From positions 18,414,001 to 18,478,000 of the forward strand of contig NC_043023.1 in NCBI RefSeq assembly GCF_006345805.1: DNA of 64,000 nt, given 5' to 3'. A model generated the notes under the pieces. That model had not been told where the DNA came from. It did not search any database and saw only the letters and a list, made by a program, of their open reading frames with translations. Shown here piece by piece: positions 7,017 through 55,855 of the stretch (within the stretch, counting starts at the first letter, position 1; every line of letters begins with the position of its first letter). This DNA comes from Octopus sinensis (taxonomy: Eukaryota). The position numbers and the translations under genes were made by a program.

Positions 7017-7186
7017 TTTTACATTCGGAATATTCCAGTATCGGTATTGATTTGGTTTGGTTATTGCCAACATCTGCCTGACACTGGCCCCGGACAGTCA
7101 CCTTTCTGTTGAACGTTGTTTTCGTATAATTTACCAAGGCTGGCAGATAACATCCACACATCATACCTGTATTGTTTTTGAGGTCA
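7017..7186 (-). CDS. LRR C-terminal cap (LRRCT) exon
   Basis: ttgcag|T GAC CTC AAA AAC AAT...TGT AAA A|gttagt = xDLKNNTGMMCGCYLPALVNYTKTTFNRKVTVRGQCQADVGNNQTKSIPILEYSECK. 170 nt; starts in phase 2 (joins the LRR exons in frame) and ends in phase 1. CxC...C...C spacing fits LRRCT. Confidence 0.85.
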
Positions 7187-7419
7187 CTGCAATTATAAAC
7201 AGAACTTTAAGTGAATGTACTTTAGAGATATGGAAAAACTCCTGCGGTATTTGAGAAGAAACAAGGATAATATAATTCCAGCAACAAGATTATAGAAGTA
7301 ATGATATTCATGTTTCGTTCCAAAAGGTGTTAATAACAACAATAAAATGAAATGGTTTCTGGTGGAAATTGAAAACATATGAAGTTCTTACTATCTTTTA
7401 GCTTATGTTTTGAATAATC

Positions 7420-7757
7420 AGAGACCACCTTCGGTCACGAATGACCATGGGATTGCACCTAGAAAGTTACCCTCCCAGGCACAAGTCCGGGCAAGGTTGT
7501 TTATGGAAGACCAACAGTCGCCCATGCATACCAGCCTCCTCTCTCCACACCACTGATGTTATCCAAGGGAAAGGCAAAGGGGCCGATACAGCTTGGCACC
7601 TGTGACGTCGCAACTCATTTCTACAGCTGAGTAAACTGGAACAACATGAAATAAAGTGTCTTGCTCAAGAACACAACACCCAGCCCGGTCCAGGATTCGA
7701 ACTCACAACCTCACAGTCGTAAGTTCGACGCCCTAACCACTAAGCCATGCGCCTTCA
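7420..7757 (-). mobile_element. tRNA-derived SINE (family 3)
   Basis: Minus strand has gaaggcgcatggcttagtggttagggcgtcgaac...gagttcgaatcctggaccggg head and a conserved body. Confidence 0.8.
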
Positions 7758-8014
7758 CTTTTGAATAATAAAGCCCCTTTAAGGAAGGAGAAGCTCCCTT
7801 TATATCATACATTACAGAAGATTTGATGCTAGAAATTCGGTGGTAGCGATTTGGCGCAGCTGTCATTGAGCAACAATGTGTTAGACGGATTGTTTTGGTA
7901 CACAGAAACTTTTGGTGCTGAGGAATTTTTGTTTGCAGCTTATATAACACTTGGTCTTAAAGTTCAATATGAGCCAATTCAGAAGCTGAATAAGTACAGA
8001 GTTTATGCGTTATA

Positions 8015-8546
8015 CAGGGTGGACCAAAATGATCTGACACGTTTGGAGGCTTAATAAAAGCACAAAATAAGAAATAATGAAAAAAAAATCATTTTCTGAA
8101 TCTACATATAATGCCATTTTATTTAATTAAGTTTTTAAAAATAAATTAGCTAAATGCATCCCATCATTGTCAACACACTGTTAGAGACGTTCATGAAAGT
8201 CATCGATAAATCTATGGATCATTTCTTCTGGAATGGTGAAATGTGATTTCTTCTTGTGGTGATATTTAAAATCAAAAGTATTCAGTCATCACCCTCGAGC
8301 TATTGATGAATTAAAACGTGCAATTTATGTAGAAATAGCAACCATTCCAGAAGAAATGATCCAAAAAGTTATCGATAACTTTCACGGACGTCTCCAACAG
8401 TGTTGACAATGACGGGAAGCATTTAGCTAATTTAATTTTTAAAAACTTAATGAAATAAAATTCAGAAAATAAAATTCTTTTCATTATTTCTTATTTTGTA
8501 CTTTTATTAAGCCTCCAAATGTGTCAGATCATTTTGGTCCACCCTG
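8015..8546. mobile_element. Non-autonomous Tc1/mariner fold-back element with TA flanks
   Basis: TA|CAGGGTGGACCAAAATGATCTGACAC... terminal inverted repeats (TIRs) at both ends. The interior carries transposase C-terminal remnant IDELKRAIYVEIATIPEEMIQKVIDNFHGRLQQC in both orientations. Confidence 0.9.
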
Positions 8547-52645: not shown

Positions 52646-52717
52646 AAAGTTGTTAAATTAGGAAGATTTTGGAAGGTTCCTGGTTTGATTTCGTTTATAT
52701 GATTGAAAGTCAGGTTC
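52646..52717 (-). CDS. LRR exon 1 (E-type), 72 nt
   Basis: ttacag|G AAC CTG ACT TTC AAT...ACA ACT TT|gtaagt = (L)NLTFNHINEIKPGTFQNLPNLTT(L). Exactly 72 nt, phase 2-2. Confidence 0.9.
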
Positions 52718-54314
52718 CTGTAACATAAATTTCAGTTGATTAGAAATTGTGTAGAACAAGATCAGTGATAAAATGTCACGCATTGTGGATAAAGAACTGG
52801 ATGATGGAGAAACGGTAACTAGATTATAATGACGTTGAAGATCATGATGATGGACATGATGGTGGCGTTGTTAGTGGTAAATATTATATGAAGGAGGAGG
52901 AGGGGAAGGGGGGGAAGAGTGGAGGAGAAGGAAGAATGTGGTGATGGTGTTGATGACGATGATGTTATGATGCTAATGATGGGATTAATTACCTTGGTTG
53001 TAATTATTTCTGAGGGTGTTGTCGATTATGGTTCATGATACTGATGATGATGGTGATGGTGATGGTGTTATGATGATGAAGCAAACGATGATGTACTATA
53101 CGATATTGATGATTGAAATACAGATGGCAAAGACCCTGGGGACATTCATGATGACAAGAACGAGGACGATTAGGGTTAGGGTGAGGGTTAGGTCATGGCG
53201 TCGATGGTGGTGACATAAATAGTACAAGTATTCGATGAGCAGAAAAGAAAAAAAATAGTTGAAAGAGTAAGAAGGAGAAAAAGGAAAAGAAGTTGAAGAA
53301 GAATGAAGAGAAAAGAAGGAACAGAAGAAGAAGAAGAAGAAGAAGAAGGAGGAGGAGAAGGAGGAGGAGGAGGAGAAGAAGAAGAAGAAAAAGAAGAAGA
53401 AAAATAAGAAGAAAAAGAAGAAGAAGAAGAAGAAGAAGAACGAGGAGGAGGAGGAGGAGGAGAATAAGGAGAAGGAGAAAAAGGAGAAGAAGAAGAAGGA
53501 GAAGAAGAAGAAGAAGAAAAAGAAGAAGAAGAAGAGAAGAACAAGAACAAGAAGTAGAAGAAGAAGAAGAGGGAGAATGAATGAATGAATGAATGAATGA
53601 ATGAATGAATGAATGAATCACCCTCTTAGAATAGATTTTTCGTAGAAAACGATGAAAAAATAGACATTTTAGCAGGAATTTCAAACCTGATGAATGAAGT
53701 TTTAAATACAGAAATAGAAGCAAGAGTCAATTATAGTAATCAGTGTTAATCTAAAGATAAAAACAGTACATGACATACAGACAGAATTACAAACACATGT
53801 TAATACTGTTGCATACACGAATCTATACACAATATGTGTGTATGTGTGTGTGTGTGTGTGTGTGTGGAAATAGACACACACTTATATAGATCTCTATATA
53901 TGTATACACATGTACACATTTCCGTGTGTTGGCTCGCATGGAGGGCGGGCAGAAGTATGTAGAATTGGTGTGTGCACAGATGTTTGTGTTCATTATGAAT
54001 ACAATTACAGCAGTGACCTTCCTTGACAAATTGCAGCCCTTCTGTCTCTGGCCATCTTCGACTCCCTGCAGTTCCATATTTTTTCGAAGTTCTGCCTTTT
54101 TGGCGAAAAGTCGCGTTAGGATTTTAAAATCTTTAATTAGCACAGAATTTGAGTCAAATAGTTTTCATCCATATATATATATATGAATATATATATATAT
54201 ATATATATATTATATATATATATATATATATATATATATATATATATATATATATATATATAATATATATATATATATATATATATATATATATATATAT
54301 ATATATAATATATA

Positions 54315-54860
54315 TATTATTGGTGAATTGAAGAAATGGAGCTGAACGAAGATTGAACAGAAATCGTTTTATTTCATTCTACACGTGTTTCGAAAGGCAC
54401 AATTTACCAAAATCCGATTGAATAATGAGACCATATTGTGTCTTTATCTTCAGGAAGAAATAGGAAATCCGTTGGAAAAAACAAAAACAGAACAGAGGCG
54501 GAGCAAAACAAATCGAACTAGGCTCCTAAGAGCCCATGGCAAAACTGTTTATCAGTGTATGTTGAGAACCGGGGGTTGAAGATTTTAACGGGTCAGGCAG
54601 CGGTCATTCCTGTGGGTGCACAGGAATGACCGCTGCCATGGGCTCTTAGGAGCCTAGTTCGATTTGTTTTGCTCCGCTTCTGTTCTGTTTTTGTTTTTTC
54701 CAACGGATTTCCTATTTCTTCCTGAAGAGAAAGACACAATATGGTCTCATTATTCAATCGGATTTTGGTAAATTGTGCCTTTCGAAACACGTGTAGAATG
54801 AAATAAAACGATTTCTGTTCAATCTTCGTTTAGCTCCATTTCTTCAATTCACCAATAATA
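54315..54860. mobile_element. Fold-back MITE-like element with ~226-bp TIRs and an internal perfect hairpin
   Basis: 54315-54540 is a near-perfect reverse complement of 54635-54860. An 18-bp perfect hairpin lies at 54597-54636. Confidence 0.85.
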
Positions 54861-55679
54861 TTAAAATTCAATTATCCGCACCAACGCACGGTTGCAACAC
54901 CATATGTTCGTACCTCCAACCGTGCTGTCTTCTGCTGTGATTTTTGCTACCAAGGTATCGGCTAAACTTTGATTAATCTGCTACAAGATTATTCATCTTT
55001 CTATTTCACATAATATATATATATATATATATATATATATATATATATATATATATATATATATATATGTTATGTTTCCCAGCTCTGATCGCCCAAATCT
55101 GATTAGCAAATGACCGACAATTCGCGTTCCATCACTAGTATAAATTGTCCATCCCACAGTATAATCGTACAAAATCAGTCACGTCATCCATGAAGATTAC
55201 TTCTCATTAGAATGGATTATAGATCCATGCTTGCTTTTCTTTTTATAGAACTAGAGATCAATATTTCGATTTCGAGCAGTACCATTTAAAATTACATTTA
55301 TCAGAATAGTTCTTCCATTTTATACAGTCAGTCATAACAAAAATATATACAGCTGGTTTTGCTAAGACCAACAGTTTTCATATTTTCCATTCCTGGAATA
55401 TTGCCATAAAGAATTTTGATGTGATAACTAACATCATCAAAGTTCAGATATTGGTCTCACCCTATCTTTCTGTGCAATACTGTAAAATATAGATTCCATA
55501 TAAGTTAATATGTACATGGAAATAGTCTACTTGACTTCGCGGTGGGTAACGTATTTACTACAACATAACACCATGTTTTAAACCTGAAATCAACACCTCA
55601 AGGTATTAGTTAAGAATATAATCAACAAGAAATTAAAGCATTGAATGTGGAAAATATACAGAAATGTTCCAAAACTTAC

Positions 55680-55855
55680 AGATATTCAATATTCGGTGGA
55701 ATGGGTCGTGGGACCGAAGTCAGGTTGCGAGATGAACAATTTATTCTATTTCCCTGACAACTGCATTTAATGCAAATGTCCAATGCAGCACGAGATTCCA
55801 AAAATAATCTCAAAAAGAGTACCAACACAAAGGTCGATTTAAGTTGATGAAACAT
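55680..55855 (-). CDS. First coding exon of a multi-exon LRR protein: signal peptide + LRR N-terminal cap (LRRNT)
   Basis: Minus strand reads MFHQLKSTFVLVLFLRLFLESRAALDICIKCSCQGNRINCSSRNLTSVPRPIPPNIEY+CT|gtaagt (176 nt, ends phase 2). Hydrophobic leader is followed by CxxCxC-x5-C...LTSVP..IP (LRRNT). Upstream acceptor ttctttaacag gives an exon 5' edge at 55873. Confidence 0.9.

Follow-up and report, generated by a model that had tools for sequence, protein, structure and literature searches.

What kind of gene is built from a string of 72-nt exons, each coding for a single leucine-rich repeat (LRR), that is spread over the minus strand of a 64,000-nucleotide stretch of Octopus sinensis DNA, and is that gene intact, already known and able to vary its product? 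The stretch (RefSeq assembly GCF_006345805.1, contig NC_043023.1, positions 18,414,001 to 18,478,000) is hereafter called the window, and all coordinates without an accession are counted from its first letter. An earlier examination of the letters alone, referred to here as the sequence-only reading, had described a hidden gene of 13 clean LRR cassettes lying between two terminal caps and had taken its product for an expanding, modular recognition protein, possibly an immune or sensory receptor. The overall best explanation of the evidence assembled below, to which we would assign a probability of roughly 0.75, is that the window carries the 5′ portion of an octopus gene whose product has a capped extracellular LRR domain. 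The exons, their homology, the duplications that multiplied them and the architecture of the family are treated as established; the fate of the frameshifts, the reach of the gene beyond the window and the use of its cassettes in splicing are weighed one after the other.

Open frames of 72 nt between AG and GTRAG were scanned for, and the peptides recovered were used as tblastn queries; this returned 14 LRR-exon-like units between 52.7 and 14.2 kb, every one of them on the minus strand; within the 64-kb window, the LRR peptides reached tblastn E-values as low as 1e-13 to 1e-15. A 29-nt degenerate core of the LRR exon has 11 matches, 11 of 11 on the minus strand, where 100 shuffles lead one to expect 0, and the strand originally proposed is thereby borne out. 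On the plus strand, the 72-nt exon pattern occurs twice, at 17449-17520 and at 26016-26087; both matches belong to a single repeat that lacks an LRR motif, and they were set aside. When exon 1 is joined to the seven intact cassettes and these to the LRRCT exon, an open frame of 284 codons results; its 284-aa product matches Pfam LRR_8 with E = 1.8e-83, passes the Pfam cut-off for LRRNT by a small amount and displays tandem repeats of the form LxxLxLxxNxIxxIxxxxFxxLxxL.

The array is opened by an exon for a signal peptide and LRRNT at 55680..55855 (minus strand), which starts with an ATG at 55855, comprises 59 codons plus 2 nt and leaves in phase 2 through a GTAAGT donor. Its product consists of a hydrophobic leader and then the LRRNT cysteine cluster CIKCSCQGNRINC, so that an N-terminal cap follows the signal peptide, with 26.0 bits against a Pfam LRRNT cut-off of 25.8. 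A further exon ahead of this one is likely, since an AG acceptor stands 19 nt 5′ of the ATG, the ~200 nt upstream (55856-56055) share 79% identity with positions 9093-9603 of an O. sinensis paralogue (L001), and the Met is preceded in the paralogues P0175 and P0177 by an N-terminal extension ending in ...KSTPGN. At the other end of the array lies the LRRCT exon (7017..7186, minus strand), with a TTGCAG acceptor, a GTTAGT donor, a phase 1 exit and a CGC...C...C motif. In the family alignment, C309, C334 and C354 hardly vary, and the exon encodes a four-cysteine C-terminal cap; Pfam LRRCT gave no match for this cap. Both terminal exons are confirmed by translation and splice sites, and the outer coordinates of the sequence-only reading, 55855 and 7017, proved exact. 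While the caps at 55855-55680 and 7186-7017 stand, 7017 is not the end of the gene: the LRRCT exon stops at its GTTAGT donor, the TAG at 7014-7012 falls within the intron, and the phase-1 splice joins a 95-nt exon at 1339..1433 (minus strand; CCATAG acceptor, GTGAGT donor), the first exon of a ferredoxin-like (SEA-like) domain. The gene thus runs on past 7017 to the 1433-1339 exon and from there leftward out of the window. With signal peptide, LRRNT, LRR array and LRRCT all present, its description as a modular extracellular LRR protein holds.

How intact the cassettes between the caps are was judged by aligning the 14 units, splice sites included, at the nucleotide level and by an exact coordinate search. 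Seven of the 13 cassettes are intact, with exactly 72 nt between a YAG acceptor and a GTAAGT donor, all on the minus strand like the others: e52 (type C, 52646..52717, phase 2-2), e40a (type A, 40729..40800), e26 (type B, 26624..26695), e25 (type A, 25151..25222), e22 (type D, 22824..22895), e21 (type A, 21480..21551) and e18 (type B, 18059..18130). The six others are reduced to 69-71 nt by 1-3 single-base deletions each, ten altogether: e44 (type A, 44344..44414) counts 71 nt, a TTCC having become TTC between intact splice sites; e42 (type D, 42009..42079) and e14 (type A, 14232..14302) also count 71 nt and lack one base each; e37 (type C, 37566..37635) and e31 (type B, 31379..31448) are 70 nt long with two single-base deletions each, and e31 bears the acceptor CCG in place of CAG; e30 (type A, 30194..30262), with 69 nt, has lost 3 bases at 2 sites and contains an in-frame stop codon. 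The fourteenth unit, e40b (40546..40606, minus strand), is a truncated type A copy without an acceptor, a pseudo-exon within an intron that stems from a local tandem duplication of ~190 nt (40414-40800) and lies 122 nt downstream of e40a. Overall, CAG is found at 12 of the 13 cassettes and GTAAGT at 13 of 13, the introns between cassettes are in phase 2-2, and the LxxLxLxxN strand straddles the exon junctions. The 13 clean cag/gtaagt exons of 24 residues announced earlier thus come down to seven intact ones and six frameshifted ones, and the statements that each is in phase 2-2 and that any subset of them splices in frame apply, in the letters as they stand, to no more than 7 of the 13 cassettes. 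One detail of the damage may be noted: in e44 and e42, neighbors of different type, the same TTCC is short of one C in the same alignment column, which may be either a coincidence or a systematic error at the TTCC motif.

The best database match of the gene is the O. sinensis RefSeq protein XP_036369864.1 (P0001), a 461-aa ‘leucine-rich repeat-containing protein 15-like’. Exon 1 corresponds to its residues 1-59 and the LRRCT exon to its residues 300-356, both at 100% protein identity, and the 1433-1339 exon encodes WTNSFVFYLIFNSTLKKFNEYKSSGVNISRA, which follows ...ECKS in XP_036369864.1 and is identical to its residues 357-387. Arranged by type, its ten LRRs read C A D A C B A B A X, the same succession as that of the cassette types in the window. 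LRR1 is identical to e52, and LRRs 2, 3, 5, 6 and 9 are identical to e44, e42, e37, e31 and e14, respectively, once the deletions of these five are stepped over; LRRs 4, 7 and 8 are 1-3 residues off their counterparts e40a (2 residues), e30 (3 residues) and e18 (1 residue). The two differ in that XP_036369864.1 has 10 LRRs against 13 cassettes in the window, which holds four extra ones (one B A D A period of 8.57 kb) and is missing LRR10, of which protein and sensitive nucleotide searches of 7187-14231 found no remnant, returning microsatellite matches only. The window gene is accordingly either the same locus as that of XP_036369864.1 or its orthologue. It is not a hidden gene: the database search proposed for the spliced protein does recover LRR_8 and LRRNT through Pfam, and the identity with XP_036369864.1 shows that the gene had already been modelled. 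In itself, it is an ordinary gene, encoding an annotated LRR protein of a family whose octopus-specific expansion had been reported before. In RefSeq, the gene range of XP_036369864.1 covers 229 kb (GCA_006345805.1) and is overlapped in antisense by a gene for a 1088-aa protein with LRR_8, GPS and 7tm_2; the two are either nested or mis-joined.

Self-comparison resolves the LRR exons and their introns into an array of tandem intron-plus-exon duplications at 13958..53400 (minus strand). The basic unit of ~3.7 kb holds two exons, one of type A plus one of type B or D. An 8.57-kb period is apparent from the match of 17086-21245 to 25652-29900; 19.5-25.8 kb matches 38.6-45.0 kb and 33.7-38.3 kb matches 47.7-53.4 kb, which divides much of the array into two adjacent and similar super-units, 19.5-38.3 kb and 38.5-53.4 kb. 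The nested tandem duplications span 2-19 kb. Once 1-nt gaps are set aside, the large blocks show a substitution divergence of 2-3%, and the introns of the array are still 85-96% alike, from which it follows that the duplications are very recent. Their youth and the four-exon difference in copy number from XP_036369864.1 bear out the claim that the array is expanding. A mechanism can be proposed in which unequal crossing-over between homologous introns would add or remove whole LRRs, the frame being kept because the cassettes are symmetric and the introns homologous.

Comparison of these copies with each other offers a way to judge the frameshifts. In the 30-54 kb zone, introns as well as exons carry a 4-5 times excess of single-base deletions over the homologous copies at 17-30 kb. 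Mismatches stand to 1-nt gaps in a ratio of ~10:1 in block pairs within 17-30 kb (102:14, 126:12 and 95:9) and of ~1:1 in block pairs that involve 30-54 kb (74:111, 13:18, 38:48 and 47:47), and most of the gaps are bases missing from the 38-45 kb copy (88 vs 23, 48 vs 11 and 23 vs 4). A five-copy alignment of a 1.75-kb intronic unit, used to count the changes private to each copy, assigns 29 private 1-nt deletions to the copy at 42.4-44.0 kb and 11 to that at 38.6-40.3 kb, with 1 and 2 insertions, respectively, and only 1-3 private deletions to each of the three intronic copies at 19-30 kb. Together, the two intronic copies within 38.6-44.0 kb account for 40 private 1-nt deletions, as against 3 insertions and 87 substitutions. 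Deletions therefore exceed insertions by ~13:1 and the ratio of single-base deletions to substitutions is ~0.4-1 in the damaged zone, introns included. Neutral divergence usually produces about 1 indel per 8-10 substitutions; a deletion bias of ~13:1, or 0.4-1 deletions per substitution, is not what it commonly yields. The usual ratio of indels to substitutions is seen in the clean stretch of the array at 17-30 kb, which can serve as an internal control.

These proportions suggest that the cassette frameshifts are probably consensus errors of a long-read assembly whose polishing failed in the repeat. This origin is made likelier by XP_036369864.1, in which five of the damaged LRRs are found intact and identical in sequence, and it is favored by the fact that the excess of deletions extends to the introns and is lacking in the clean half of the array. 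Were the frameshifts real instead, the array would be partly decayed in this genome or haplotype, and the gene would have become a pseudogene or would yield transcripts subject to nonsense-mediated decay. This account, which we regard as unlikely, can point to six cassettes of 69-71 nt and one mutated acceptor, to the good splice sites that 5 of the 6 damaged cassettes retain and through which they would be spliced in, and to a search that turned up no annotated protein from the window's own source; it has against it a deletion-to-substitution ratio of ~0.5-1 and a deletion-to-insertion ratio of ~13:1 that take in the introns and are unlike usual neutral divergence, as well as five damaged cassettes that do not differ by a single residue from the intact O. 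sinensis LRRs. Some observations nevertheless speak against assembly error as the whole explanation. The deletion-rich copies at 38.6-44 kb also exceed the others in private substitutions (56 and 31 vs 4-35 elsewhere), a surplus that makes some real decay possible; the lost acceptor of e31 is a substitution and not a deletion; exon 1, e52 and e40a are intact although they lie in or adjoin the deletion-rich zone; and the errors themselves are inferred. If the frameshifts are indeed consensus errors, the locus is an example of a live gene that, through uneven polishing of a long-read assembly rich in repeats, can appear half dead and be missed by annotation.

The quality of the assembly also bears on the number of cassettes. 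Part of it could be an artefact, haplotypes or collapsed repeats having been laid in tandem, in which case the true array would be shorter or different. The large blocks are only 2-3% apart, one of each pair falls in the badly polished zone, and XP_036369864.1 is short of exactly one 8.57-kb period, all of which an artefact would explain; XP_036369864.1 itself, however, has both type-C LRRs, LRR1 and LRR5, and the duplication of the super-units must for this reason be both real and shared, while the 8.57-kb pair is wholly contained in the clean zone and has a normal mismatch-to-indel ratio. An artefact of copy number is on these grounds quite improbable, and the young duplications, together with the four-exon difference, would mean that the number of repeats in the binding domain is evolving now.

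The relatives of the gene indicate what may lie beyond the window. An exhaustive HMMER search with P0121, an O. vulgaris paralogue, found only 44 cluster representatives among 1.84 billion; the named members among those looked up are all octopod (O. bimaculoides, O. vulgaris, O. sinensis and Argonauta hians), and NCBI labels on the relatives looked up read ADGRA3, ADGRG6-like and GPR126-like. Long members of the family carry LRR_8, GPS and 7tm_2 over the Pfam thresholds, with a Death domain in one and HRM (E = 7e-4) in one. In P0121, the LRRCT is succeeded by the domain that begins at 1433-1339 and then by a Cys/Trp-rich stretch with a weak HRM match. A family-specific domain of ~100 aa is hence situated between the LRRCT and a HormR-like region, and its first exon is the one at 1433-1339; in XP_036369864.1, this domain is 73% identical to that of P0121, and it aligns to the LRR-GPS interval of P0130, P0140, P0141 and P0152. 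The number of LRRs varies across the family, the LRR part ending from about residue 210 to 560. After the LRRCT and ahead of the domain that follows, many members (P0002, P0122, P0175 and P0215) have a ten-Cys domain resembling Ly6/uPAR (...CCxGxLCN), which P0175 bears three times in tandem; XP_036369864.1 is without this domain, and no Ly6/uPAR-like exon was found in the 5.6-kb intron of the window gene (7016-1434). Complete members of the family, judged from their domain order, read LRR, (Ly6/uPAR-like), SEA-like, HormR-like, GAIN/GPS and 7tm_2, which is the layout of an adhesion G protein-coupled receptor (GPCR) with an LRR head.

A family of this description has been published. The ‘group 3’ expansion of octopus adhesion GPCRs is made up of clustered genes, 5 of the 22 members having LRRs and one a Death domain, and is expressed in the axial nerve cord, suckers and skin (Ritschard et al., 2019; PMC6408891). 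The relatives of the window gene match this octopus-specific expansion (PMC6408891), with which the octopod HMMER relatives share LRR, GPS and 7tm_2, a Death domain in one member, clustering and restriction to the lineage. The window differs in that it contains no more than the LRR head and the exon that opens the domain after it, with no GPS or seven-transmembrane (7TM) part visible, and the published account does not describe exon structure or cassette isoforms (PMC6408891). As for function, nothing points to the immune role that had been considered possible, and the published expression of the family is that of axial nerve cord, suckers and skin (PMC6408891).

Whether the window gene itself continues into a transmembrane or GPCR part had been left open by the sequence-only reading. 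Its full-length relatives do carry such a part, in the form of GPS and 7tm_2, which is of the adhesion class and not the rhodopsin-type 7TM of LGR/GRL101, and by analogy with these paralogues we infer that the window gene would continue likewise. The RefSeq end of XP_036369864.1 may be a truncation, given that the close paralogue P0124 continues exactly where it stops: P0124 passes from ...ELFDEM into FCNED... and the HormR-like region, and XP_036369864.1 passes from ...ELFDEM into AVW and a stop codon. It is also conceivable, with a chance that we place short of even, that the gene encodes a stand-alone secreted protein of LRRs and a SEA-like domain, as in the RefSeq model, and not the N-terminus of a GPCR. 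XP_036369864.1 would in that case be complete where it ends, 3 residues past the SEA-like domain, and many family members are indeed annotated as short LRR proteins; many of these short models are, however, marked partial, XP_036369864.1 stops exactly at the exon boundary where P0124 and P0121 enter the HormR-like region, and the full-length relatives have GPS and 7tm_2. Continuation into a GPCR is weakened in turn by the 461-aa RefSeq model, which stops after the SEA-like domain and leaves the link to a 7TM part to the paralogues only, by a HormR assignment that lies below the Pfam threshold and by a SEA assignment made on topology only.

That topology comes from a structure predicted by AlphaFold2 (AF2) for XP_036369864.1 with a 23-sequence family alignment. 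The model has a mean predicted local distance difference test score (pLDDT) of 88.9. Its solenoid is regular, each 24 residues contributing one strand; residues 312-324 make up the LRRCT cap helix, and residues 358-456 a beta-alpha-beta-beta-alpha-beta domain with pLDDT 80-93. For this last domain, no Pfam SEA match was obtained and Foldseek found only generic ferredoxin-like folds with E > 0.006; its predicted topology and its position ahead of the HormR-like region lead us to call it SEA-like. The solved folds nearest to the predicted LRR domain are the ectodomains of chondroadherin, LRRTM2, FLRT2, the Nogo receptor and LGR4. Chondroadherin, LRRTM2, FLRT2 and the Nogo receptor align with a TM-score of about 0.85 on the target at 27-29% identity and are relatives in fold only; in vertebrates, the LRR domains of these four proteins are mostly encoded by one or few exons.

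In solved LRR proteins, the LxxLxLxxN strand forms the concave binding face. Residue variation among the cassettes is concentrated at exon positions 1, 3, 4, 22 and 23, which are the x positions of LxxLxLxxN; by analogy with the solved proteins, these variable positions at the exon junctions would form a ligand-binding face. Recent cassette pairs show ~22 nonsynonymous vs 2 synonymous changes, but these pairs are non-independent and the binomial P of about 0.1 is not significant. The sample is too small, and no claim of positive selection on the cassettes is made.

The organization of the array invites the question of whether its cassettes are chosen by alternative splicing. Two O. sinensis paralogues, on VCDQ01005429.1 (L001) and VCDQ01004985.1 (L002), likewise have one LRR per 72-nt phase-2 exon, with two exon types alternating in L002 as they do in the window, and this shared layout marks it as a trait of the family. 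For one O. sinensis paralogue, RefSeq lists 13 isoforms with lengths of 409, 385, 361 and 337 aa, and for a second one 7 isoforms with lengths of 525, 501 and 477 aa; in both, the isoforms are set apart by the presence or absence of entire 24-aa LRRs in the N-proximal part of the array; the C-proximal LRRs and all that follows them stay the same. The variable units of L002 are its four 5′-most 72-nt cassettes. These exons share only 40-67 of 72 nt, a divergence that makes the mis-mapping of reads an unlikely cause of the isoforms. L002 also contains two well-formed 72-nt LRR exons, 28668-28739 and 31667-31738, downstream of the last one used in any of its 13 isoforms. Nothing specific to LRR cassette splicing in octopus was found in literature searches, nor were the isoforms of these paralogues found discussed.

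By extension from the paralogues, the cassettes of the window gene might be used combinatorially, alternative splicing producing many ectodomain variants of a recognition receptor. The 13 and 7 RefSeq isoforms with their whole-LRR differences, the low likelihood of mis-mapping in L002 and the symmetry of all the cassettes speak for this idea; on the other side, the orthologue XP_036369864.1 is a single RefSeq product, RefSeq isoforms are computed models and so few of them fall well short of a diversity system. Combinatorial splicing is accordingly plausible at the level of the family, and for the window gene it remains a tentative and rather doubtful proposal. The same caution applies to a broader conjecture, which we would likewise rate below the readings preferred above and as speculative: that the pools of young and symmetric single-LRR exons in the octopod family of LRR adhesion GPCRs are a diversity device, in which combinatorial choice among N-proximal cassettes would go hand in hand with rapid acquisition and loss of cassettes from genome to genome, and that the window gene is one such locus caught in expansion. 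If it were true, many receptor variants would be expected in the arm nervous system, suckers and skin, comparable to the expanded protocadherins of octopus or to Dscam of insects; confirmation of the isoforms would point to splicing-based variation of the binding head in an adhesion-GPCR family of octopus peripheral nervous tissue.

Several known systems resemble the gene in part. With the lamprey variable lymphocyte receptors (VLRs), to which it had been likened, it shares LRR modules placed between fixed N- and C-terminal caps. The lamprey cassettes, however, flank an incomplete germline gene, are without splice sites and are copied in somatically, whereas the octopus gene is complete and ordinarily spliced. 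That the locus is a somatically assembled VLR-like cassette system, or else an LGR/GRL101-type receptor, the other comparison that had been drawn, is highly improbable. The sole support for either is the resemblance of one LRR per exon with caps at both ends; the octopus cassettes have canonical AG/GT sites and stand in order within the introns of a complete gene, with which the orthologous mRNA model is colinear, and the closest full-length relatives combine GPS with 7tm_2, neither 7tm_1 nor LDLa being present in them, while the window itself shows no transmembrane exon.

The exon pattern has closer precedents elsewhere. Published accounts describe one LRR, or an LRR pair, per symmetric exon in Slit and NLR genes (Little et al., 2002, as cited in PMC6642158), where alternative splicing of the LRR exons is in part potential and in part proven (PMC6642158; Hoss et al., 2019); the arrangement is thus not new in itself (PMC6642158). 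In Slit and NLR genes, as here, the symmetry of the LRR exons means that skipping or duplication keeps the frame. Slit differs in having four capped LRR domains together with EGF, LamG and a cystine knot, whereas XP_036369864.1 has a single capped LRR domain and no Pfam match to EGF or LamG; the LRRs of NLR proteins are of the ribonuclease-inhibitor (RI) type and cytosolic. Homology with Slit and NLR proteins is limited to the LRR fold.

Among adhesion GPCRs, vertebrate ADGRA2/3 (GPR124/125) bear a head of LRRs and LRRCT, and vertebrate ADGRG6 (GPR126) has SEA, HormR and GAIN ahead of the 7TM part. The octopus family joins both layouts, with many more LRRs in varying number. It differs from ADGRA and ADGRG6 in the Ly6/uPAR-like Cys domain of many of its members, none of which has Ig, CUB or PTX.

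The remainder of the window, which is AT-rich (35.6% G+C), is full of microsatellites and transposon remains. The two 3′-most large introns of the gene contain stretches, at 8011-8550 and 15857-16407, that match their own reverse complement at ~80% and represent palindromic or inverted low-complexity repeats. A dispersed repeat of ~430 nt occurs in four copies, 85-89% alike and in both orientations, at 448-890, 4149-4549, 56106-56538 and 57473-57889. Transposon remains on the plus strand include a 327-aa open reading frame (ORF) with a weak CCHC zinc knuckle at 2596-3579 and, at 61226-63086, an RVT_1 ORF (E = 1.9e-23) after which further ORFs follow.

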